64,000 nucleotides of DNA from Podarcis melisellensis (lineage: Eukaryota), in the NCBI GenBank assembly GCA_964234715.1, contig OZ174281.1; one strand, given 5' to 3'. A program made the translations under genes and the position numbers. Below the pieces are notes generated by a model, which worked only from the letters and a program-made list of their open reading frames with translations, did not search any database and was not told the origin of the DNA. Positions 1 to 60,115 of this stretch are shown here, piece after piece. Position 1 is the first letter of the stretch, and every line of letters starts with the position of its first letter.

Positions 1-1430
1 AGGAAAGTGGGAGCCACCTAAACGGGTGTGGCTGCATAAGGAGCTTAAAGATGAGCTGAGGTGTAAGAAGGGAATGTATAAGCAATGGAAGGAAGGAGAA
101 ATCAGGAAGGAAGATATACAGTTGCAGGGAGAAGGTCAGGCAGGCCAAAGCTCAGAATGAACTCAGGCTTGCAAGAGAGGTTTAAAATAATAATAATTTT
201 CTTTGGTTGTGTTTGAAGCAAGAGGAAGAACAAGCAAGTAGTAGATCTCTTGCGTGGAGAAAATAGAGAAATGCTATTGGGTGACAGAAGGCGGAACTGA
301 TCACCTATTTTCCTCTGCCTTCACCCAAAAGGAAAGCCAGTGCCTAACCTGATGAAAGCATAACAAACAATGCAAGGAGGGAGCTGCAGCTCAATATAGT
401 AAACCAGGTGGTAAGGAATTCAAATCTCCAGGGCCTGATGAGCTGCACCCAAGAGTAGTAAAGGAGCTTGCACATTTGATATCAGAGCCTGTGTCTATAA
501 TCTTTGAGAATTCTTGGAGAACAGATGAAGTCTTTGCAGAAGGCAGAAATATTTCACCTGTTCTCCAGGCAGGCAAATGTCCCCATCTTCAAAAGGGTGG
601 GGAGAAGACCCAGGTTACTATTGACCAGTCAGCTTAACATTTTACCAGGAAATGCCCTAGAACAGATAATTAAAAGATGCTTTGATTACAAAGACCCAGC
701 ATGTGTATCTCAAAAGCAAGTCATGCCAGAAGAGTCGTTTTTTAAAAAAAAATAGTTGCAAGCAGGGGAATGCTGTGGACATAGTGTATCTTGATTTCAG
801 TAAGGCTTTTGACAAAGTCCCTCATATTCTTGCAGAGAAGCTGGCAAAATGTGGACTGGAAGAGGTATCTGTTAGGTGTATTTGCAGCTTGTTGACTGCC
901 CAAACCAAAAGAGTACTCACTAATGGTGTCTTGTCATCCTGGAAAAGACGTGACAAATGGGATGCCACAGGGTTCTGTCCTGGGCCTGTTGTTGTTCAAC
1001 ATCTTTGATGAAAGTATTCGGGGGCATCGGAATCGGGATTCAAGATGATCTTAACAAGATTGGAAAACGGCCAAAATGGATTTCAGTAAGGACAATTGTA
1101 AGGTTCTATACTTAGGCATGAACAACTGCACAATTATAAGATGGGGGACATCTGGTTTGTCAATAGTACATGTGGAAAGGACCCCCAAGCTTAACATGAC
1201 TCATCAGTGCTATGCAGGAGCAAATCAAGGGAAGTAAGTACTGCTCTATTCTGCCTTGGTCAGGCCACACCTGGAGTATTGTGCCCAGTTCTGAGAACCA
1301 CAATTTAAGGAGGATAGTGGAGGTTTTAAAGTAGATGTTGGGCAGCCATATGCCATGTATGATTTAGTTGATATTCCTGAACTAGATGACCCTTGGGGTC
1401 CCTTCGAATTCTACAATTCTGAGATTCTAT
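1..1430 (+). mobile_element. Degenerate CR1 LINE (ORF2 reverse-transcriptase region plus 3' tail), cut by window start
   Basis: ORF 682..1008 contains the CR1 RT motif AVDIVYLDFSKAFDKVPH; an SPGPDELHP-type motif lies near 425-455; it ends in the CR1-type tail ttctacaattctgagattctat (~1409-1430). Many frameshifts. Confidence 0.85.
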
Positions 1431-2615
1431 TATTCTAGGTGGCAGGGAGGGCTGATAGACAGGTGAAGCTTTGTAGCAGATTCCCAATTCAGGAATCATA
1501 ATCTACCCTGTGGCAGAACAGTCAAAGAATCTGCAGCCCAGAGCCAAATATATGCAGAGGTTTCTCACATCTAGTTATGGCAGATGTGGAAATACAGGTG
1601 TTGCACATGGTGCTTTTCACTGTCATTGTCAAAAGTACAAGATCTCTCTCTGAATCATATCTCTGCTTACTTCAGCATAAATGAGTTCCCCTTTCACTTC
1701 TGCAGATGATAAAAAATAAGTGGAGAAAGCAAGCCCATGGCAGCAGCTTCCAGTGAATGTTTATACATTAGAACTATAATTCCGCTGGTAAGAATGGTCC
1801 CTTTTCCGAGATTTTGTAGACTCAGTTGCATCCTTTACTTTCTGTTTGTTGTGCCTTACCACAGGTTGTATATAGTTGTGTCCCTTTGTTGATAGAAGAC
1901 TCTGATCTTATGCTTCTATGTACAGAAGGGAGAAAAGTTTCTTTATGCCACCTTCCCTCTGCAGCTTCTTATTATTGCTCCTTCTTATCATGCGTCCCAA
2001 TTTGTAAGTTTGTATTTTATCACAGAACACTTCCTATTATACTAAGGGACCCAACACCGTGGCTTGGTTTACCCATTGCTATTTTTCACCAGTGGATTTG
2101 AAACTTGTCCCCCTTGTACATGTCAATAAATTATACGTGAATACACATGCATGAAAGAGAACAGATAATTTGTTCTTCAAACTGGTGGTTTTAAATAAGA
2201 TTGTATTTAGGGAGAGTATCTTTTGATTCTGTGTTTCCTGGCCTTGTCATTGTGGCATTATGCAAGGAGGCTACTGTGAATTTTAAGCAGGAGTGGGGAA
2301 TCTGTCTCTCCAGATGTAGCTGGACTAAACTCCCATCATCAATGACCACGCTGGCTGGGGTTCTGTCCAATAATGTGAAAGCGATGGGTTTCCCTGTCCC
2401 TGATTTAAAGCAATGGAGTTTACATGACCCCCTGTCCCATTCCCAGTGAAAAAAGGAATCATTTAATATTCAGTTTGTCTACTTCACTAATAAAAGGAAT
2501 CAGACTTGGCTAACATCCTGCTCCTCGTTAAACTCCATTTTTTGCCACAACTTATTATGAATTCTTTAAAAAAAGTCTTGCAAAAATAAATATATCAAGA
2601 TTAAGCCTTGCTTGC

Positions 2616-2621
2616 TTTATT
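2616..2621 (-). terminator. Candidate APCDD1 polyadenylation signal (AATAAA)
   Basis: tttatt on + reads AATAAA on -, ~890 nt past the stop codon, followed on - by a U-rich tract (tatttatttttgcaagactttttt). Confidence 0.4.
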
Positions 2622-3506
2622 GAATTGCCCAGTCTAATAAAATGAATGTCAAGTGCATTGCATTTGGCAAACTGTCCACTATCCTGAATTTCTTATGAAG
2701 ATATGGTGTAATTCACCTTGGTTTCTATATTTGAGAGATCTTGTTGCTTTCTTCCCTTTGTCTTTGCTTTTTCAAAGTTGGTGGAAAGTGGTTGGTGGAC
2801 CCCTGAAATTGCTTTGAACTGTGATAAGTTGGGCAACTTAATAAAGAACATTGGCGCCATATGTCACTCTAAATCTCCGATTATTCTTAAATTCACCACC
2901 TATATATACAATCATTTAAATTATCTGTGCAGGTTTAATTTGAGATTTTCCATTCAGCATTCTTGATCCTAAAGATCATGTAATATTTTATGTAAACTCT
3001 ATAAAAGTGTATTTAAGATACATCCTTAGTTGGATTTTTCATATATACATATATACACTGTAACATAAGAACAATGCAGTTTATCAGTATTGACACAATA
3101 CGATAAAAGCATAATTCTAGATAATCAAATTCAAAGATGAAACTGATTTGGGGAGTAGGAACAACTGCAACAGCACAGTTGGTAGATGAAAATATGTGTA
3201 AGATAGTTCAGCCCAATAAGTTTTTCTTCCAAAGAACAAACTGAAGGCAGGGTTGAAGGGTGAAGAACTGCAGTTTTAAAGTGCAATTACTGTTGTGCAG
3301 TCATGTCAGGCCATGGATCAGATTGGATGAAGTTCAAAGCAGAAGCAAACTGGTGCTATTCATGATTCAAGGAGGATAAAAGGAACAACAGTTCTTCAGG
3401 CATCAAGAAAATGTCCTTTTTTTGTCTGTTAAGATGCTTTATGACATCTCCCCATGTAGCCTAAGTCCTATACTTGCCCTGATAGGAGTCATTTGAAAAT
3501 GCAATT

Positions 3507-3958
3507 CTAGCTGTAAATGCCCAACGTTGGCACAGTGCTAACAGCCAGCATCATAACCAAAACAAAAGCACAGGGATTTTTTGCTGGTGCTCCACTGCTG
3601 TACCATCCTAGTTTGTTTTCTTCTAAAGTTTCATCTACTCTTGGTGCGGATGAAGTACATTGAATTAAGGGCATTTGGTATGAGGTGGCTCTCTTTTCTG
3701 GTCTGTCGGGACTGGATCCATCACTAGGTCTCTGGCCATTATACAACAAGTATCTCCCTCTGGCATCCTGCTCCATTTTGAAGATCTCGTACTCTGTATG
3801 CGGCAGGCGAATTCCCAAAGCAATGCAGCCGTTGGTGTGAGTAACATCTTGCTGCACCCCAACTTGCCAGGATCCTTCTGCCCCACACTCATTTCCATTG
3901 AAGACATTCAGTAGAGAGGCAGTAGCTATGTCCATGGGTGTAACCTTCATATGATTCA
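3507..3958 (-). CDS. APCDD1: APCDD1 coding exon 5 (last)
   Basis: Acceptor tttgcag|TG at 3959-3961; translates (V)[33 protein letters not shown]...[12 protein letters not shown]...LGIYS; TAG at 3507-3509. Confidence 0.97.
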
Positions 3959-6900
3959 CTGCAAAAAAACAAAGAAGGGACTGTTAATTGTGCCTTGAGG
4001 TAATATGATTTTGTCAACAGCCAGATTTCTATTTCAGGAGGAGCTTGATTCTCTTCTGTAGAAGTTTCTAAACCCGTTGACCTTGAAAGACACAGCATTT
4101 GCTTCTGAACTAAGCCTTTATAAATGTGAAGAGTAACTCAAGTGTATGGAAAGAAAGAAAAAAGTGGTTTAAAACCAAAACCAGTAAGAGTTGCAAGTGA
4201 AGTCATAAGAAGAGCCCTGCTCATTAGCTCCTGGGCTCTAGTTCATCATCCTGTTCCAGCAGTGCCTAGACAGATACTTTAAGAAAAGTACAAGTGACAG
4301 CCATTCCCGTTGTTTGCCCACAGCAACTGCTTTTTCACAGGTAAGCTTCCTGTAAACCATTTAGCTATCATAACTGATCACTATTAACAGATCTATCCTC
4401 TTCTGAATGTGTCTCAATCCCCTTTTAAATTTATCTAAGCTAGTGGCTCTTAGAACAATTTCCACAAGTTAAGTGAGTTGAATAAATATGCTCTCAGATC
4501 TAGTATTTAGTAGTGGAACACTAGTAAGGTACATGGTTGGCTTATTGTGGGAATTTCTTGTAGCAGTGCTCTCTGTTTTGACTAGATGAAAATAATCATA
4601 AGTCATTTTAAGAGTGAGTAAAATGTAAATCAGATACAGTTGTACCTCAGAAGTTGAACGGAATCCGTTCCAGAAGTCTGTTTGACTTCCAAAATGTTCA
4701 GAAACTAAGGTGCAGCTTCTGATTGGCTGTAGAAGCTCCTGCAGCCAATCGGAACCCGCTGAACCCACATTGGATGTTTGGGTTCTAAAGAACATCCGCA
4801 AACCTGAACACACACTTCCGGGTTTGTGACATTTGGGAGCCAAAACGTTAGACTCGCAAGGCGTTTGACTTTCGAGGTACGACTGTACATAGATTTAATG
4901 ACACTGCTGAATTCTCAGTGTGGTAACAATGCTCAATAATTTGAGCAGTACCAGAAAACAAGCTCTCAAGGTAGCCATTTGTTTTTGCAAATCACCCATT
5001 TTATCTTTATGGTCACTTTGTATGCCTGTACGTTGCCGTTCATTTCTCCTCTCTTCATGGAAAACAAAGCTGATCTGAGAGTGAGGACAGGGCTTCCTGA
5101 ACTGCTGAGATAGGTGACCTCAGCCAAGAGAACCATTCCCCCTGCCCCACAATGAGCAAACACTTTTTTGCTCACTCCCTGAGTAACAAAATTGTCTAGT
5201 GTGGTGGTGGTTTGCTTTCTGTTGCTGCTGGGAGACTTGCAAAAAGTGTCATTTCTTGCAGCTCAGCCTCGACAGCGTTCAGAGGAATTAGTCCTTGGGC
5301 ATGACCTAGATTTAATATGCTACTCTACCTTATGATAATACAAAACAGGTTGCATCACCTCCTCTTCTATAGTAACCATTGCTGGTCTGTAAGGTATATG
5401 TATTCCTCCTTGGCATGCTTCACTTCTCATTGTCACTGGACTATCACATGACTGCTTTACAGCTATTGGACAATGTTAAGAAAAGGTTTAAATTTCCTTA
5501 AAATATGAAATCATGCAACTGCTGTGTAACACGTATGTGTGTGGAAAGGCTACACCAAGGAAGACTGCAAACCGCCAATCTTGATTGATTTACTGACCCT
5601 TGGCCATGAACAAATATTTCCTCATTTTTTCTTGTTTTAATGAGCATGACCAATGCAAGCATTTAATTTTGTTAGCAGTGTTTACATCTCTTTGACATTC
5701 ATTTCAACGGAGGACTTGAATCAAAGCTTATGCACTCACATGTTTATAAGCAAGAGAGTTCTGAGCTAAAATGGAGTTCCTGTACCCATAAGCAGCCTCT
5801 GGATTAGAGGGTTGTCTATTATTGCCCTAACTTCCTTATGCACATGCTAGATAAAATAGCATCAAAGGTGAGGCAATTACTTTATACCTTTACTCATTAG
5901 GTTAGATCATGTGATTACTAGAGTGGTTCTGATCTCTGATCTAAATATAACAAAACTACATTTAACTTTTTTTTTTTTTTAAAAAAAGCACGCTTAATTC
6001 TGATAGTTATTTTACAGGGAAAACAGCCACAGGGTGCTGATCCAGTACTTTGCTCTCAATCCAAGCTTTAAACATACATTCATAGAAATTTGTTTCCATA
6101 CACATATACCCCCAGTTATCCAGTTGCTCAATAAAGCTTCATTAAAGTAAGCACAAAAATTAATGCACGTTTTAAAATAAGGTGCCAATTTATTTGAAAT
6201 TAATTATAAATCATTTTTCCAGTTTGATGCTCTTGATTTCTTTTTAAGCCTCTAAATGTCATCAAACATTTTAATACGCCTATTTTTTCAAAGTGTAAAA
6301 CTCAAATATAATGAGCTGGGGACAATAAATTGGGTCAGTTACTTGTTCAATTTTCACAAACATTTTTAGCTTCTGTGTTGTGGGCATGCTAAGCAAATGA
6401 ACTAACATTGGTTCACATAATTAAGTCTTCAAGGAGAGGGGAAAGCAAGTTCCACCAAAAAAAAAAAGAAAATAAAAGACTGATGTCTAGATAGGAAAGG
6501 CAAGAGATTAAACAGTTTCTATTTCACAAGCCTGCTGCCCCAGGCAAGCCTACAAATAAAACCAAGTTGGTTTTCATGAGAGAGGACGCTATAAAACTGC
6601 ACTCAAATTTCATTTAAAAATTGTTCTGTAGCCAGGATATAAAGCTATGTCTTTTAACATATACTTGCTCAGAAAGCTAATGAAGTAACCAGTTCCAAAT
6701 GGAAACCAAAAACCTCAGAAAATGTCAGCTCCATTACCATCATATATTATCCACACTTTTAAAGCTTCATGTGTGCAACATCTTGAGGAATGGATAATCT
6801 ATAAACTTCAGAGCTTTTAAAAAAAACAACCTTGATTTATATCAGCCAAGTTCTCCTAATCCTGAAAAGACTGACTAGATTTAATTTAAAAGTAATTTAA

Positions 6901-9900
6901 ACAATTTTGTTTTGAGTTCCAGCTGAACTGAAAGGGCCTCAAGAAAGGGAATTCCAAACAAACTTAAGTTGGTCCAGTTTCAAGTTTGGGTGGCATATTT
7001 TAATAAATTTATATGAACAATTCAACAAATCCTAACAAAAATCCAGGCCCCCTTGCATGTCATTTCAACACAGAAGCAGCCCTGTTTAGATTTGTTATGT
7101 TTGACTTCATCCTTTGACTTCATAGGTTAGCTTTTATGGTCTATGCTTAAGACTGGAATGCCCACCAATTGATCACAAACCCAGGAATGCCTTTATAAAA
7201 GTGATGGGCAAGGTCTCCAAGTTTGTCGTGGATGTTAGGAGTGAAGGCTTTTTGTTCCTCAACTCTGCAGGAGTTTGGTGTGTTCTCTCACCATGTCGGA
7301 AAAAGAACTCACAGCCTTACGCTTTAGGCAAAACCACCTTTCATTTTATAGTTGCCATGTGTCTTTTTCATTTGATTCTTTTAAGAACTGTTTGTAGCTC
7401 AGCTATCCCTGGGGTTCTATTTAAAAGCCAAGGAGAACTGCTTGCTCTCTTTAAGGTGAATGATACACGTTTTATATTTATTTAACACAGTTGGCTGTGA
7501 TTACAACACTTTAGAATTTAATTCCATTGTTTCATAACAGGTATCTTAACTTGATTTTTTGGTAATTAGTTCAAGTCTGTCTTACACTACTTCCAAGCTT
7601 TAAGTACTTGCCCTTTATTTGACACTATTTGACCTTGCTGCTTTGCAGCAAGTTTCTTTCTTTCTTTAGAAGGAAGGAAGATCTTTATTTTCATTTGGAT
7701 TTGATATCCCGCCTTTCACTCCCTTTAAGGAGTCTCAAAGCAGCTAACATTCTCCTTTCCCTTCCTCCCCCACAACAAACACTCTGTGAGGTAAGTGGGG
7801 CTGAGAGACTTCAAAGAAGTGTGACTGGCCCAAGGTCACCCAGCAGCTGCATGTGGAGGAGCGAAGACGCGAACCCGGTTCCCCAGATTACGAGACTACC
7901 GCTCTTAACCACTACACCACACTGGCTCACTGGTTTGCAACAGAGCTTCCACCCCTGCAAGGAGGTGAGGACCCAGAACAAAGATGTGTTACAGCTTTTA
8001 AAGGCTTTAGAAACTGCCCAAGCCCTCTTCCAAAGACCACCCAAAAGCATCATACAAGCGTCACAGAAAGAGGTGGTCTATTACAGAAATCTGAGAGTCT
8101 GTCAAAATACCCGATAATGCTTACTGATTCCCCTTCCTTGGCCAGTCTGGGCCATTCAACTTAGTGCAGCAGCACAAGGCAGGAATCATGAGAACTACGG
8201 GAATATAGTCCTACTTGAAGGCAGCAGGAAGCTTAAATAAAGCATTGCATGGCTACAAGAAACTGAGCTGGTCTACTGTGAGATGGATATCCAAGAACAT
8301 GTGGGGCCATTTGGTATGATATTAATCCCTCCACATATGTGTTTTGCTACGTGCTATAAAAATTATGCTGTACTTTGGAAAGGGCTTTGGTTGAAAACTA
8401 ATGATCTTACCTTTAAACACGAATTCTGTTCCGCCCATCACTCTGGATGAATGTACTCCCCGGCTGTAACGACCCTTGGCATAGATGGTGAAAGTGGGGT
8501 GCTTGCAGATTGGGTCAGAATAATGATAGTAATGACCTTCCCAGGTATTGTTGTTGTCATGGAAGATGAAGTGCCTGGTGAGAAAGAGCACTTCAGGACG
8601 CACTTCGCAGCGCTGGCTCGCCCACTCCCCATGTAATCCAATAGTCAAATCAGCCTTCGGAGGTAAAATTGGTGGGTGGTGTTCATCTGACCGATAGATG
8701 ATCCTGCATGCTATACATGAATGGTCATGGTTCTGAAACAAAACCAACAGAAACCTTGTAAAACTGATAGAAACTTTGTAAGGCACATAGTCAGTTGCTA
8801 GCAAATCAAATTTCCTTATAGGTTCAGTACTTAGAGTGCCTAAGAGATGGGTGGGCCATCAGATGCATATTTTTGAAACTGGAAACTTTCAAAAGCAGGG
8901 GAAAGGGCGGGGTACAAATAAATAAAAATAATCAATTTTGTAATATGAAATGGAAGGGGAAGCTCCCCCCCCCACTTAATTGCACTGGGCATATTCAAAC
9001 ACTTGAGCATATTTACATCACTCTGGGATGTTTTATGGGAAGCAATTTGTAAATAAATAAATAAGTAATTTGGTGAATTCCAGCCTACAGATAGTACTTA
9101 AGAGTAGGTGAAAGTGAAACACTTTTTCCTTATGTGTCAACAGCAAGAATTACCACCTTCCCTTGACTGATCATGGCCACGGAATTTAAAGTTTCCCCTT
9201 TTTGTTATCTTGGGCTCTTTCATGCCATTTCATAAATTAACAATTTTTTTTAGCTTCTGCTTTTGTGCATACTAACATTTGTAGAATTCTAAAATTTGGA
9301 TCCCGTTCGCATCCAGAGGTACCACTGTAGTGCTAAAAAGTCCCCAGTCTAGAAGCTCCTAGAGGCATGTTCTCTTACTGGTTCTATAGCATGCGGGAAA
9401 ACAATAATGGCAGAATTTCTGTGTTTTCCACTTACACTGCATAAAAGTTTAACAGGCAGATTCTTTTACAGAACCAAAATTTGGCAAGCAACCTTAGCCA
9501 TTGTAATAGCCCTTGGGATGCAAGTGTGACCTTATGCCACTGATGAGTCTGTGATCCTCAGAGGCTGTTGGATTCCAAATTTCATCAGCCCCCACAACAG
9601 GTTCTCATCCCTGACTTGTGCTGTAATATTTACTTCCAAGGTTTGCTAAGGCAACCAAGGCAGACTCTGGGGCTTCTGTGCTGTGCAAAATGGAAGTCTT
9701 TTCCTTCTCGTTGCAGGTTCTACACAGTTGCAACCACATTTGATACATGGCCAGATTTGTAATGTATTTCCATACCTATTTTCACGTTTTGCACTAATAA
9801 TGCTTTTCAGTATAACCATATTCATTTATTCCAGTGAATGATTTACTATCCTACAGCGTTCTTGGAAAAACAAACCGTATAATATGTCGTGCCATTTCTA

Positions 9901-23300: not shown

Positions 23301-26300
23301 ACAGGGGTTGGGAAGCTCTGGCCCTTGAGCCCTAGGCAAGCTAATGTAGCCTGTTGGGCAGTTTTGCCATGCCCACCTGTCACTCACATGACATTGTATG
23401 ATGTCAGGTTCAGGTCATGTAAAGCTGCGGCTCTCAAAAAAAATTGGGATGCAAGTCATAAAGAAGCAGCAGTAATAAGGGATGTGAGAGGGCATTGGGC
23501 AAAAGCTGTGGAGGAAATAAGACTCATGCTTGTGGCATATGAAGATCTTTGCATGAGAGTTTTTGGCTTAGGTATTTGGGGCATTTCCTGCAATAAAGGG
23601 ATACTCTTTGCATGTGCCTTGGAACTGAAAACCGAAATGTTCACATACCTTAGCATTTTGAAGAGGGGGCTGGTAACTAGATGGACGATAATACATCCTC
23701 TGAGCAGGATCAGTGTGTATGTCTCCAAGAAATAGCTCCTCGACCAAGTGATCTAAATTATGGTGAAGGTACTGTTTCTCCACACGGATTAGTTGAAGCT
23801 CGTGCATAGCAAAATTCAGCGCTCTGGTGCATTCGTAGCCATTCTCTTCTCTCCATAAATCGTAGCTCACATTCTGCTCCCAGGCTTTATCTTCTGGTAC
23901 AAATCCAGGGCATGTGCGGTTCACCAACTGACTTAGTCTCTCAGCCACTGCCTCACTATGGCAGATTATCTGTATGTTGTGCAGCTGGTAATCTGCTTCA
24001 GTCCCTCCTCGAATGATCCAGGATGCTTGGCGAAGGCGGATTTTGCCACGGATAACTAAGGTATAGATTGGGTTTGTGCATCGGTTACCTCTGTAGTAAA
24101 ACTGATAGGCCTTGAATGTATTATTGTGGTAGAATCTGTAGGATCTAGTGATGAATTCTGGGCCTGACCTTACTTCACAACTGTAACCAAATTGCAAATA
24201 AAAGCATAAGCTTAATGAGGTGTGAAATGAAGTATATCAAAGTAGTCAATAAGAAGATGACAGCACTAATAACACATTTAATTAACACCACAATATTCGC
24301 AATAGTGAACCAAAATAGTAATTTTTCTTATCTTCCTTTACTTAACATTAAGTTTCTGGTTTCATTTTTTAAAAGACGTTTTAAAAGGTATATTAGTTCT
24401 ATGCTGCATTTGATACTTTTATTTTCATTTTATTGCTGACTTCCTCTTTTCTCCACATTTAGTGCACCAAGTACTTAGAATTGCAAAGGTAAAGGTAAAG
24501 TGACCCCTGACCATTAGGTCCTGCCACAGACGACTCTGGGGTTGTGGCTCTCATCTTGCTTTACTGGCCGAGGGAGCCGGCGTACAGCTTCCGGGTCATG
24601 TGGCCAGCATGACTAAGCCACTTCTGGCGAACCAGAGCAGCGCATGGAAACGCCGCTTACTTTCCCACCGGAGCAATACCTATTTATCTACTTGCACTTT
24701 GACGAGCTTTCGAACTGCTAGGTTGGCAGGAGCAGGGACCGAGCAACAGCTGTGGATTCGAACCGCCAACCTTCTGATCGGCAAGCCCTAGGCTCTGTGG
24801 TTTAGACCACAGCGCCACCTGCATCCCTACTTAGAATTGTGGCAACTCTATTCCAAGTACTGTCAAGGAAGACAAAGATTTCCCCCTACAATACCATTAT
24901 CTGTTCATACAATACCATTATGTGTTCACTTTTGCCACCAGGCAGGCAGTGGTGGATCAAATGCTACTGCTGGCAGTGGCCAGAGTAAGGCCCTGAAATA
25001 GAGCATTATGGGTGTGAGGCAGTGAAGGGTTAGCCATGGAGCTGCTGAGCCCCAGGCTGTTCCAGGCCCCCCACATGCACCAGCCTGGAGCTGCCACAAC
25101 AGAAAATAATGGCTGGCATGAGCTGGCAGTGCTTCAGATATGACAGCTGTTTTGATGCTCCTGGCCAGGGTTTAGAATTGCTTTGCCTATCATGCTTAGA
25201 GTAAACCCATTGAAATCAATGGAACTTCAGGTGACTTCAGTGACTCTACCCTAAGCGTGAACATGTCTGGATCCAACTTGACGTCTTTTTTTCCTTCTTC
25301 AGTTTTTCTTAAATATGTATATCTAACATGAATAAGCTTCTGTCAAAGCCTCTAGACCTGAAGATAAATATTCTCATAAGCTCAATAGCTTTTCAATGAG
25401 CCCCTTCCTGTTTTATTTCTGTGTGACAATGTGGTTATGTTTCTTAAGAGATAGGCAACACTTTTAATATATTTCTACTTCCATGGTGATAAAATCAACA
25501 AGGAAAAGGAATGACCACACCTGCCTGGCTTCAGGCAAGCAAAGTAATAAACATGCTTTAATGTGTTTATAAAATAAACCCAAACTAGAACATCTGAAAT
25601 ATTTGTGTAAGGCTTATAGTTGCAAAAAAGAAAAAAGGGTTTTTAAGCTGAGCTCTTCCTAGTCTGCTTGCTTTCTGCAAGTACAACAGATTCCTCCTAA
25701 GTGATGGGAGCCCAACATCTTCTCCCTGACTTTCCAGTGATATCTGTGGTGGATTTGAGTGAGGATTACTGCTTACTCAAACACTATTTTTATTAACTTC
25801 AGTGATTGGTTTGCCTGAATAAGGACTGCAGGACTGGGCTTGAAGGGAATCTTATATCCCAAGGAGCCTTCCTAAGAAAATAATTGCGAGTACACAGCTG
25901 TATATTTGCAAGCTGAGACTACAAAATAAATACCTCTGCCTAACTGAATGTTTGTGATCTCAGATAAGCACTTGTGCATGCTTGGGCTCGTCAGCTAAAG
26001 CTTCATAATTTCATTTTGTTAATGAACTTTGTTTTATACACATGTCACATGATACAGCAATAAAGGCAAGGATTTATTCACTCGCCCTTGCAAGCGGTCT
26101 GAATAAGCAGATGACATATGAACATCCTATGAATAGGCTGGCAATTTTCAACAACACTGTGGTTTCCAAAGTAAGGAAGACTGAAATGCCTTACTGTTTA
26201 ATATACAGACAATAGCCACAAAATTCTGAAGGCTCACTTTTGTCACCAGAAAAGCTTCTGTGTCCATAGGAGAAGTTTTCAGCTTTCCTCTCAATAGCAG

Positions 26301-43768: not shown

Positions 43769-44519
43769 TAGGATCAGTCTATGCTGGAGGTGAATTACAT
43801 CTCTAGACTTTCTTTTTGAGCCACTCAGCAGAACTGATTCGCAGTAGCATAATACAGATGAAGGGAAATATTTCTTTCAGGTTGGCGCCCAAGCCTTTTT
43901 GTTGCATGAGGCAATACGTGAGATGCCACTCCCTGACACCAATTCCATGTACTGGCAGCTGACTGGGCTGGAAGTTGAAATTTGCTTCAACAAATTGCTA
44001 CAGCATAGTGTCAATGGATCTTACTCCTCAGGGCACAATGCATAGGATTGCAGCCATGTTGATATTAAGTAGCTGGTACTATTGTGTACATTTGTGCTTA
44101 TAATGGATCAACACAGTTGTCTGCATTTTTTATTTCTCTTTGGGTGTGTGGCTATGAACTCTCCTTACGGGCACAGCTATAGGCAGCATCAGTAAGTGGG
44201 GCAGGGGCAGCAATTACCTGATCTTTTGTCACTGGCATTGTTGTGGCTTACTGGGAGGGAGGGGGAGCTGCAAGAAGCAAATGCAGCAGTAGAGCCAATC
44301 TAGACCTCCTGTGAACAAGTTTGCACTGTGCTGACCTCACTGCTGCTTCACCTTCTCCCTCCCAGTAATCTGCAGCAACACTGGTTGTTTGTAAATCACC
44401 CTTGGATCTTTGGATGAAGGGTTGTATACAAATTTAATAAATAATAATAAACAACACTGCTGCCACACCTTGCAAACCCATACTGGCTCCTGGGGCTATT
44501 TACTGAATCCAGCAAAATA

Positions 44520-46178
44520 CAGTGGTGCCCCGCAAGACGAATGCCTCGCAAGACGAAAAACCCGCAAGACGAAAGGGTTTTTCGGTTTTTGCGACGCTTC
44601 GCTAGACGATTTTCCCTATGGGCTTGCTTCGCAAGACGAAAGCCCATAGGGAAATCTCCGGGGACCTCTTTTAAATGCTGGCGGTGGGGAGCAAAGCCTT
44701 TCCCCCCCCTCTGGACTTCAGAAGAGGTCCAGGAAGGCCGGCGGGGGCGAAAGGCTTTGCTCCCCACCGCCAGCATTTTAAAAGCGGTCCGGGATAGCAG
44801 GGAAGCGCTTCCCGCTATCCCGGATGGCTTTTGAAGGCAGGCGGGGGAGCAAAGACTTTTGCCCCCCGCCAGCCTTCAGAAGAGGTCCAGGACCTCTTCC
44901 AAAGGCGGGCGGGGGGCAAAAGTCTTTGTCCCCCCTGCCTGCCTAACCGGGGGCTTTTAAATCGCCCCGGGACTGTCCGGGGCGATTTAAAAGCCCCCGG
45001 ACGGCTTTTGAAGGCAGGCGGGGGGGAGCAAAGACTTTTGCCCCCCGCTAGCCTTCAGAAGAAGTCCTCTTCCGATTTAAAAGCCCCCGGACGGCTTTTG
45101 AAGGCAGGCGGGGGGGGGGGAGCAAAGACTTTTGCCCCCCGCCAGCCTTCAGAAGAGGTCCTCGGGGCAATTTAAAAGCCCCCGGTTAGGCAGGCAGGGG
45201 GGACAAAGACTTTTGCCCCCCACCCGCCTTTTAAATGCTGGCGGTGGGGAGCAAAGCCTTTCCCCCCCTCCGGACTTCAGAAGAGGTCCAGGAAGGCCGG
45301 CGGGGGCGAAAGGCTTTGCTCCCCACCGCCAGCATTTTAAAAGCGGTCCGGGATAGCAGGGAAGCGCTTCCCGCTATCCCGGACGGCTTTTGAAGGCAGG
45401 CGGGGGGGAGCAAAGACTTTGCTCCCCCCCGCCTGCCTTCAAAAGCCGTCCGGGGGCTTTTAAATCGCCCCGGACAGTCCCGGGGCGATTTAAAAGCCCC
45501 CGGTTAGGCAGGCAGGGGGGACAAAGACTTTTGCCCCCCGCCCGCCTTCAGAAGAGGTCCTGGACCTCTTCCGAAGGCGGGCGGGGACAAAAGTCTTTGT
45601 CCCCCCTGCCTGCCTTCCCGGGAGAGTGGGAAGGCAGCGCTGCCTTTTCCGCTCTCCCGGAAAGGCAGGCAGGGGGGAGCAAAGACTTTGGCCCCCCGCC
45701 GGGGGCAAAAGTCTTTGCTCCCCCCCGCCTGCCTTCAAAAGCCGTCCGGGGGCTTTTAAATCGCCCCGGACAGTCCCGGGGCGATTTAAAAGCCCCCGGT
45801 TAGGCAGGCAGGGGGGACAAAGACTTTTGCCCCCCGCCCGCCTTCGGAAGAGGTCCTGGACCTCTTCCGAAGGCGGGCGGGGGACAAAAGTCTTTGTCCC
45901 CCCTGCCTGCCTTTCCGGGAGAGCGGGAAGGCAGCGCTGCCTTTTCCGCTCTCTCGGTAAGGCAGGCAGGGGGGAGCAAAGACTTTTGCCCCCCGCCAGC
46001 CTTCAGAAGAGGTCGGGGGACAGACTGTCCCCGGACCTGGTCTGAAGGCGGTTTCCATAGGAACGCATTAATTGATTTTTAATGCATTCCTATGGGAAAC
46101 CGTGCTTCGCAAGACGAAAAACTCGCAAGACGAAAAGACTTGCGGAACGAATTAATTTCGTCTTGCGAGACACCATTG
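44520..46178. mobile_element. 1.66-kb non-autonomous Tc1/mariner (Tigger/pogo-like) element with repeat-patchwork interior
   Basis: TIRs cagtggtgccccgcaagacgaa / ttcgtcttgcgagacaccattg; TA TSD (44518-19, 46179-80); subterminal cgcaagacgaa repeats at both ends; no transposase. Confidence 0.9.
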
Positions 46179-56858: not shown

Positions 56859-57230
56859 GTTGTTGTTTAGTCGTTTAGTCGTGTCCGACTCTTCGTGACC
56901 CCATGGACCAGAGCATGCCAGGCACTCCTATCTTCCACTACCTCCCGCAGTTTGGTCAGACTCATGTTTGTAGCTTCGAGAACACTGTCCAACCATCTCG
57001 TTCTCTGTCGTCCCCTTCTCCTTGTGCCCTCCATCTTTCCCAGCATCAGGGTCTTTTCCAGGGAGTCTTCTCTTCTCATGAGGTGGCCAAAGTATTGGAG
57101 CCTCAGATTCACGATCTGTCCTTCCAGTGAGCACTCAGGGCTGATTTCCTTAAGAATGGATACATTTGATCTTCTTGCAGTCCATGGGACTCTCAAGAGT
57201 CTCCTCCAGCACCATAATTCAAAAGCATCA
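56859..57230 (-). mobile_element. BovB (RTE) LINE, 5'-truncated 3' end
   Basis: Open frame DAFELWCWRRLLRVPWTARRSN...LQYFGHLMRREDSLEKTLMLGK...GVTKSRTRLND; (CAA)n tail; perfect 13-bp TSD aaagatatcaaat (56846-58 / 57231-43). Confidence 0.95.
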
Positions 57231-57722
57231 AAAGATATCAAATACACAGTGCTTAAATAAGTTGAGCTCTTTGCATCTACAATTAGGAATTTGCATATGG
57301 CAAGAATCATAGATTTAATAGTAGAGGTGACATGATACTTCACTATCAGTTTCCGCCATCAGTATCATAATGGCATAGAATTAGACGTGAGACAGGAGTG
57401 CTAGCTTGGCCCTGCGACCATGGGTGCCCAGAGCCATGGGTGCCACGTAGCAAACATGGCCCTGGCATTAAAATTGCCTGGCCCCTTCATGGGGAATTTT
57501 GTTGGTGCTCAGGCACCCATGGCCCCAGAGAGTCAGCACCTGAAGTTATCTATACTTTCTGATACCACTGTTGTCCCATGTGGCAACTGAGCAAACCTTC
57601 TTAGTGCAATGGTAGATATTTTCCATCAGCTGGCATTCTTTCCACTTTATAAATGAGAAAATGAGTCCAGAGATGTTGACTCACTCAGGGATGCCCCAAG
57701 AAGTTAAGGTTCAGCATAATTT

Positions 57723-59621
57723 TTTGTAATAATGTTTTTTATTTCAACAAGGTATAACAATAACAAAATATTTATAAAAATACATAAAATTTTATATAAA
57801 ATAAGCAATCAATGATTAAAAGGCCAGGCTTCATTTTTGACGCCTACTTAGAAGATTCTTAACAGTCTTCTTTAGCCCATGTATAATTGAAGTGCTCTTG
57901 TGGGTACTGACCTCTTGTTCCAACACCTGGGACTCTCTGGTAGGTGGTGTTCTGGAAGAAGTCTCTTCTCTGATTATTGAAGTAGGATCTTCAGGGTCCT
58001 TCAGATCTACATGTTCTTCCCCAACTTCCCTTTGACTAGATTTTCTGAGGATTATCTCCCGCACCAACTCAGATGATGAGTCTTCCTCATCTGTGATCTT
58101 AGATTGATTGGCGTCATAGGGGGACTCCAGGCTGTCTGGTACAGGGGCCTTCTGGCCACTGGCAGTCTGAACAGATGTTAATCTCTGTCTGAGGGTTTGG
58201 AGCTATTTGCAGAGCTCCTGGTTCTCCTTCAAAACCTCTCTTATGGTGTTCCTATCTTCTTACACAATTATTTCTTGTATCTGGGTCATCTGGCCTGCTG
58301 TTTCAGTGACGTTATAGCTTGGTTTCTCCATCAGAGATTGTAAGTTTTCTGAGGGCTCACCACCAATAGACACTGGAAGGGTCTCTCCGCAAACCTGCAG
58401 CAGTGAGACCTGCAGCTGTTGGACCCGCTGCTTTAGCCTGGCAATCTCTGCTGCCCAAGAGTCCATATTCACTATCAGCTTGTTCTTTATTTTTCTGACC
58501 CTATCAGCATAGCGAAGAGTATTCAAAGTGTATTTGAGGTTCAAATCTGTTGGGCCCACACATGCTTTTGCCTTCCAAGGAATCTTGCAAAAGGCGTGTT
58601 AACTTGCAGTCTCTATAAGGGACAAAATTGCCCTTCCTCGTTTCCTCCCCAAGAGCGCAGATGACGTTCCGCAGGCAGAGGAGTGTTTTGTTGATGCTGA
58701 TCCCTTCCCGCAGTCTAACACCTTCTGCTTTTGTATTGCTTTGCCTTTCTGAACCAGTAAGGTCTACGAAGTGCAGCTTGGAATGCAAAATGGTGTTCTT
58801 ATCACTCTTGCTTTTCTGTCCAATGGTCATGGTGAAGATGGTGTGAGAGCGTGATGACTGGGTTTCATGGCCATGGCAGCCACCGTTCAGCAGTTGTTCC
58901 CCCGCTCCAGGCACTGGATGATCTCTTCAGCAGACTTCACCATGTGCTCGGTTAGCCCCTCAACCTTGATGCCTCCCTTGGGATCTTCACAGATGCTGAT
59001 TCAAGGTTTCTTCCTTTCCAGTGGTGCCAAGAGATCTAAAATGTCATCACTGTAGATCTCCAAATAAGAGACTTTCAGGGAAGACTGCCTCTCTGACCAT
59101 TCTTTCATTTCTTGGAAGAGAAGCTTTATTGCCGGAGAGATGATTCTGACAGTGGGATCATTCTCTTTGTCAGCTGTGTAAGCCACTCCCATGGAGTATG
59201 TTTTCCCAGATCCTGTCTCACCATAAGCCAAAACCGTGGCATTATACCCTTCCAAGATGCCCATTATAAGGGGAGAAACACAGGTTCTCTTGCTCAGTAG
59301 ATGGGTCAAAGACATAATCATATGTGAATGCTTCGTCAGTACATAGAACACATGCTGTTCTCCAGGGACAAAAGTCAAACACATCTGGCAACTCTTAAAA
59401 TGTTATTTAGAAATAAGGGGGCTGCACTTCAGTGCCACCTGCACAGGGATGATCCTGGCCTCTTCCTTCAGCATTTCATAATGTTATATTCCAGCTCTCA
59501 CCCACACCCTCTCGTGCTGAAGAAAGTTCCAAGGTGAGCTCGCAGGACGGCGGAGGCCAGCTCTCCCCCTTGCAAAGTCCCCCATCCAGCCTGCTGGTGC
59601 GCCCTCTGGAACTCACACCCT
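57723..59621 (-). pseudogene. KIF4: Processed (intronless) pseudogene of a KIF4-family chromokinesin; former CDS 59474..57831
   Basis: Starts MLKEEARIIPVQVALKC; P-loop GETGSGKT (59199-59222), [51 protein letters not shown]. Stops at 59403, 59001, 58887, 58260, 58203 plus frameshifts. No introns; AATAAA at 57738-43; 15-bp TSD. Confidence 0.93.
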
Positions 59622-60035
59622 GGTTCATCATAATTTATAAATAATTATTTTCTAGTGAAAATAAGATGATTCATCTTATTGTGTGACATGTTGAAAAATG
59701 ATTATGTAAAATACAACCATGCCTATATGAAGTTTTAAAAATAGTCTGTACTTTCACAGATACATAGCAGTAAAGGTGTTAGGCTATAGAAATATTCACC
59801 CAAATCCCATTTCCCAAGAACAGTCCAAACTTCTTGCTGCAGGCGATGAAAAACATGGAATGTTTTGAAGCATAAACTATTCATCTACCTAATGAAACAA
59901 ACAGGAAAGAACTGAGCCTAGCAATAATGAATCTGTCATTATCCAGTTTCTAATTTTTCTAGTCTTAAGATCAAATCTCCCATTTCAGTTCGCTTTTTTT
60001 TAAAGTCCTCACAAAAATTGCTTAACATTTTAGTT

Positions 60036-60115
60036 ACAGGTAGGTAGCCGTGTTGGTCTGCCGTAATCGAAACAAAATAAAAAAATTCCTTCCAGTAGCA
60101 CCTTAGAGACCAACT
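60036..60115 (-). mobile_element. Penelope-like terminal fragment
   Basis: caggtaggtagccgtgttggtctg...ccagtagcaccttagagaccaact is the reverse complement of 39060-39147. Confidence 0.7.

Follow-up and report, generated by a model that had tools for sequence, protein, structure and literature searches.

A decayed KIF4-type retrocopy in Podarcis melisellensis and the short transcript from which it was probably made

Canonical vertebrate KIF4A is a protein of about 1230 amino acids, so a KIF4-type retrocopy only about 1.9 kb long raises the question of which transcript served as its template. We addressed this question in a stretch of 64,000 nucleotides from P. melisellensis (hereafter the window), in which a processed KIF4-type copy spans positions 57708-59636 on the minus strand, flanked by a 15-bp duplication. 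A first-pass annotation had attributed the copy to a short KIF4-derived kinesin with a new tail. We arrive at a different reading, to which we assign a probability of about 0.6: the template would have been an exon-skipped, probably aberrant KIF4A mRNA, copied by a LINE-type reverse transcriptase and now dead.

The insert, its ends and its KIF4 parentage

The two copies of the target-site duplication (TSD), GGTTCAGCATAATTT downstream and GGTTCATCATAATTT upstream of the insert (Table 1), are identical at 14 of 15 positions, and the pattern has just these two matches in the 64-kb window compared with 0.01 expected by chance. The 15-bp duplication with one mismatch, as first annotated, is thereby confirmed. 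From ATG to TGA the insert spans about 547 codons.

Table 1. Features of the KIF4-type insert, in the direction of transcription
Feature	Position	Strand	Basis
TSD copy upstream of the insert (gene on minus strand)	59622-59636	.	one of two matches in the window
5'UTR-like leader, 147 nt, GC 0.58	59475-59621	-	base composition
ATG	59474-59472	-	frame reading
Start codon, degenerate KIF4 motor and neck	58425-59474	-	Pfam, structure and fragment matches
First KIF4 coiled-coil exon after the neck, 10-codon gap	58260-58424	-	last continuous block of KIF4 similarity
Tail, 142 codons in the motor frame, further stop at 58205-58203	57834-58259	-	frame reading, shuffles
Terminal TGA	57831-57833	-	frame reading
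Short AT-rich 3'UTR, ~100 nt, AATAAA at 57743-57738	57726-57830	-	sequence
Residual poly(A), 3 A	57723-57725	-	sequence
TSD copy downstream of the insert	57708-57722	.	one of two matches in the window

The leader is distinctly richer in GC than the flanks (0.33-0.44), and we infer that it represents the 5'UTR of the parent gene; for its distal 95 nt, no second copy of at least 80% identity was seen among the contigs of related species. At the opposite end, AATAAA is located 12 nt ahead of the insert end and is followed by a run of 3-6 A. Because three of the six A at 57725-57720 are the first bases of the TSD, the poly(A) remnant is minimal. The leader, start codon, terminal stop and poly(A) signal thus agree with the earlier description of both mRNA ends, whereas the A-run amounts to very little. 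The insertion target reads TTTAT/AAAT. T-rich/AAAT is the kind of site cut by LINE-1-type endonucleases, and LINE-1-type machinery presumably made the insertion. An additional ATG at 59479-59477 on the minus strand, five bases upstream of the KIF4 start codon, opens a mini-ORF of three codons; it is private to the P. melisellensis genome, the relatives having ATA at this place (59477 C>T on the plus strand).

The parental gene family of the copy is KIF4. Using the stop-free pieces separately, the longest of which comprises 140 aa, we obtained matches of the motor to Pfam Kinesin with E-values of 8e-24, 8e-36, and 3.5e-5. Among solved structures, the mouse KIF4 motor is the best match, with 137 + 119 bits against 93 + 58 for KIF7. 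The neck also matches KIF4, and a 158-aa mammalian KIF4 fragment (P0003) is 59% identical across the neck and the first coiled-coil segment. With KIF4 as the best match for every motor piece and a TSD on either side, the initial assignment as the retrocopy of a ~1.9-kb KIF4-type mRNA holds. The Pfam search detected no stalk domain in the insert; there are no internal repeats within it, and no second KIF4 copy was found in the 64-kb window.

Two observations show that the copy is free of introns, as had been claimed. Non-orthologous contigs of the relatives match the insert in exon-sized blocks only (59058-59250, 58802-58963, 58703-58798, and 58584-58705), with 86-89% identity and unrelated sequence on either side. 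Furthermore, a compact KIF4 gene of a distant organism with very short introns (Logan contig SRR23967709_445321, positions 1-9397; hereafter L001) has introns before the DSLGGNSH segment, after AEIARLKKL, and after ...LYEKNFL, i.e., at positions equivalent to 58584/58583, 58425/58424, and near 58260 of the insert, where the retrocopy continues without interruption. L001 also contains a pogo/Tc5-type transposase ORF of 652 aa (CENP-B_N, HTH_Tnp_Tc5, DDE_1) on the opposite strand, directly downstream of its Cys-rich exon.

Compared with canonical KIF4A, a chromokinesin, the insert has a motor, a neck and a first coiled-coil exon that are clearly KIF4, but it lacks both the KIF21A_4th Pfam domain, which is seen in L001, and the Cys-rich domain, and its catalytic motifs are damaged. 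With LINE-1 processed pseudogenes it shares the intron-free spliced structure, the TSD, the poly(A) signal, the A-rich T/A target and the neutral decay. It differs from them in that both mRNA ends are kept while a large internal coding part is missing with a break at an exon boundary, and in that its poly(A) tail is nearly gone.

Decay and age

The KIF4 reading frame and the catalytic motifs are no longer intact. The copy contains five in-frame stops (59405-59403, 59003-59001, 58889-58887, 58262-58260, and 58205-58203). Its frame is shifted at least four times: close to 59345, close to 59275, at 58863 by the loss of 1 nt, and at 58565 by the loss of 17 nt, which takes out the conserved HTLMI strand. 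The P-loop reads GETGSGKT (Q>E) and switch II DLTGSE (A>T). Such a broken frame speaks against the function that had been considered, for example as a meiotic or spermatid motor, and we see no indication of a working motor protein. None of the runs on record as RNA contained the insert in our run search; one run guessed to be RNA yielded patchy contigs over insert and flanks at a depth of 2-11.

The insert is present in all four relatives examined, at about 94-98% identity, and both junctions are bridged in three of them. In organism B, a single contig of 2431 nt covers 57484-59915 at about 98% identity, including both junctions; in organisms E and G, contigs tile the insert and bridge both junctions; and organism H has pieces of the insert at about 94-96% identity. 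Each DNA run with matches contains more of the searched words than the flanks alone could supply. An empty site with a single GGTTCAKCATAATTT, as envisaged in the first-pass annotation, was found in none of the four relatives, all of which have the insert sequence.

The deletions at 58863 and 58565 are common to the orthologues, whereas three of the stops are private to this genome, since the relatives read TCA at 59003-59001, CGA at 58889-58887, and GAA in place of the TAA at 58262-58260. At 59345, organism E has an extra base, which returns the next segment to the N-terminal frame. The listed differences between species are distributed over codon positions 1, 2, and 3 as 8, 11, and 10. Together with the shared frameshifts, this even distribution indicates that the common ancestor already carried the copy as a pseudogene and that drift has continued in it ever since; neither it nor the three private stops bear any mark of purifying selection. 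The retrocopy differs from the parent-type exons by 11-14% but between species by 2-6% only, which makes the insertion several times older than the species splits. The copy is thus an old, neutrally drifting processed pseudogene without function, and its proper annotation is that of a KIF4A processed pseudogene, a well-known kind of element, and not that of a gene.

Primate KIF4B, to which the locus had been compared, is a full-length, intact retrogene of the X-linked KIF4A that is maintained by purifying selection and expressed in testis (PMC1251493). The parallel holds as far as an independent retroposition from the same parental gene family is concerned. However, the lizard copy has neither stalk nor Cys-rich domain, carries five stops and at least four frameshifts and evolves neutrally, so that it is no intact retrogene. 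The Z chromosome of lacertids probably corresponds to chicken 4p and 17; should KIF4A be Z-linked in these lizards, the copy would represent a failed movement out of a sex chromosome, comparable in this respect to KIF4B.

The exon-boundary junction and the tail

Continuous KIF4 similarity stops at 58263-58260, at most one codon from a conserved exon boundary at which both P0003 and L001 pass from exon into intron (ttg/gtaagt in L001). The chance that a random deletion breakpoint falls within 3 nt of an exon boundary is about 5%. Retention of the intron after the first coiled-coil exon is an unlikely source of the sequence that follows, since this sequence does not start with GT. The frame of the motor contains only two stops in the tail, one of them private to this genome, versus nine in each of the other two frames, and this was equalled in 46 of 5000 shuffles. 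An open tail in the phase of the motor suggests that the tail was coding sequence spliced to the first coiled-coil exon, and the combination of an exon-boundary junction with an in-frame open tail makes a template that was short and spliced more likely than a random deletion. Judged from the sequence, the retrocopy therefore probably had a short template.

The tail itself was not recognized in any search. Its 142 codons include a single Cys and hence no Cys cluster, and it has no Pfam match. The 123 aa encoded by 57834-58202 had no true match among 1.84 billion representatives, each standing for one 50%-identity cluster; two hits, a bacterial repeat protein and a protein of 351 aa, proved spurious on inspection. 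There was also no match in the PDB (E<=10), in the ESM Atlas or in a word-indexed set of 5.8 billion sequences, in which proteins of 68-215 aa only were covered. These negative results are weak, because the representatives stand for 50%-identity clusters, the corresponding region of KIF4 is poorly conserved and the last set was limited to 68-215 aa. L001 is too diverged for a comparison of the tail, given that the true coiled-coil exon itself scores no better than shuffles. A literature search on KIF4A in lacertids and on two peptide words returned nothing.

Set against human KIF4A, the tail would be collinear with the native C-terminus minus the Cys-rich domain. The stretch at about 58160-58098 presumably corresponds to the C-terminal coil that follows the stalk, with a putative shared pattern, L-T-x-x-Q-x-A-S-x-Q-K-x-x-P-x-D-x-L-x-S-P, in which 12 of 21 residues would be identical without gaps. 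From there the tail would run through what we take to be the acidic stretch and the basic motif preceding the Cys-rich domain; after the missing domain it presumably resumes with D-P-x-x-x-T and ends near the basic K-K cluster. Organism G has another copy of the tail blocks 58158-58068 and 58020-57924, of single-copy depth and interrupted between the two blocks, and in organism B a further contig covering the block 58020-57924 ends at the same 58020/58021 boundary. We assume that this break marks the position expected for the Cys-rich exon. We propose that the tail consists of the native C-terminal exons of KIF4A without the Cys-rich domain. If the start of the tail is indeed the native C-terminal coil, no new tail is needed, and the one that had been postulated finds a counterpart in no protein that we searched, while presumably resembling the KIF4A C-terminus. 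Should the collinearity hold, the supposed unknown parent gene would also simply be KIF4A.

Template, sister copies and neighboring sequence

According to our preferred reading, a LINE-type reverse transcriptase would have used a spliced and polyadenylated KIF4A transcript, about 1.9 kb long, as its template and inserted the copy at an AT-rich target, creating the 15-bp TSD. The 5' part of this transcript would have comprised leader, motor, neck, and first coiled-coil exon. Splicing would have connected the latter directly with C-terminal exons much farther downstream, so that all of the stalk as well as the Cys-rich domain were absent; the usual stop codon, a short 3'UTR and the poly(A) signal would have come next. 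Frameshifts had arisen in the copy before the related species split, and it has drifted neutrally since then. Of the ~550-codon template first suggested, the length (about 547 codons) and the absence of stalk and Cys-rich domain are retained in this proposal, but not the new tail. Three points count against an exon-skipped mRNA: none of the searches linked the tail to KIF4A, a transcript that omits about 15 exons at once is unusual, and a single retroposition of a rare aberrant transcript does not predict the additional intron-free contigs of the relatives.

These other KIF4-like contigs are 84-89% identical to the retrocopy, and several of them cross the exon joins 58802/58798, 58705/58703, and 58584/58583. 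They imply that at least one sister copy exists. In organisms E and G (runs X12 and X18), a single-copy contig joins the end of the motor at about 58446/58490 to the tail at 57998. It matches 58446-58595 and 57933-57998, omitting 447-490 nt of the retrocopy, which suggests that these genomes have another KIF4 copy at a different place, shortened in a different way. In organism H, a 547-nt contig over 58479-59001 has the 17-nt deletion as well but not the 1-nt loss at 58863. A sister copy could be a DNA duplicate of the retrocopy or the product of another retroposition event involving a similar short transcript.

Sister copies could also mean that the template had been a genuine short kinesin-4 with a tail of its own, i.e., a germ-line-expressed KIF4 paralogue or retrogene or a regular isoform. 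Such a template would suit the exon-boundary junction and the in-frame open tail, at least one more intron-free copy in the relatives links the motor end to the tail, and repeated retroposition of a short transcript could explain the further copy of the tail blocks. We nevertheless consider it unlikely. No protein with this tail turned up among the 1.84 billion representatives, the putative match to the native C-terminal coil would make a new tail unnecessary, and every copy seen is degenerate. In addition, the organism H copy with its 17-nt deletion fits DNA duplication of a dead copy better than a functional source.

Alternatively, a full-length KIF4A mRNA may have been retroposed, with stalk and Cys-rich domain being lost by later genomic deletions. 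Small deletions after insertion are real (17 nt at 58565, 1 nt at 58863, and 11 nt in one relative), and full-length KIF4 retrocopies are known, as illustrated by primate KIF4B (PMC1251493). This course of events appears decidedly improbable, however, considering that the main break coincides, to within one codon, with a conserved exon boundary, that the large gaps all keep the frame while the small ones break it, and that the short form is already present in all relatives examined.

A slim chance goes to the idea that lacertids regularly make, or once made, a KIF4 transcript without the stalk, be it an isoform or the product of a transcribed retrogene, that was retroposed more than once. As read from the sequence, it would have encoded motor, neck, short coil, and acidic tail, and its regular production would explain why the relatives have several intron-free contigs with motor and tail. 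Least probable by far is a chimera, produced when the reverse transcriptase jumped to KIF4A mRNA from a different, unrelated RNA that supplied tail and poly(A) signal, or a tail that is flanking or transposon sequence: this would account for a tail that no search recognizes, but the tail continues the KIF4 frame with few stops, both parts lie within one TSD pair, the tail showed no high-copy depth in any of four runs, and its presumed similarity is to the C-terminus of KIF4A.

If an exon-skipped KIF4A mRNA was indeed the template, the copy would preserve an unusual germ-line transcript without the stalk exons, which would mean that retrocopies can record rare splice forms. The apparent sister copies in the relatives could in turn help to date LINE-driven retroposition in lacertids.

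The retrocopy is flanked by very high-copy repeats, as indicated by summed depths of 1-2 million for 57200-57296 and 60013-60100 in the DNA runs of the relatives. An ORF of 158 codons at 56867-57343 on the minus strand has no Pfam match; its C-terminus presumably resembles the end of ORF2 of Bov-B/RTE LINEs. About 34 kb downstream of the retrocopy, the minus strand carries two APCDD1-type exons at 23568-24197 and 8322-8804 (Pfam APCDDC, E 1e-81 and 1e-27). A tandem repeat with a 94-bp unit (44978-45185, 2.3 copies, 87% matches) sits in an island of 58% GC (44000-46000) whose ORFs contain repeated peptide units.
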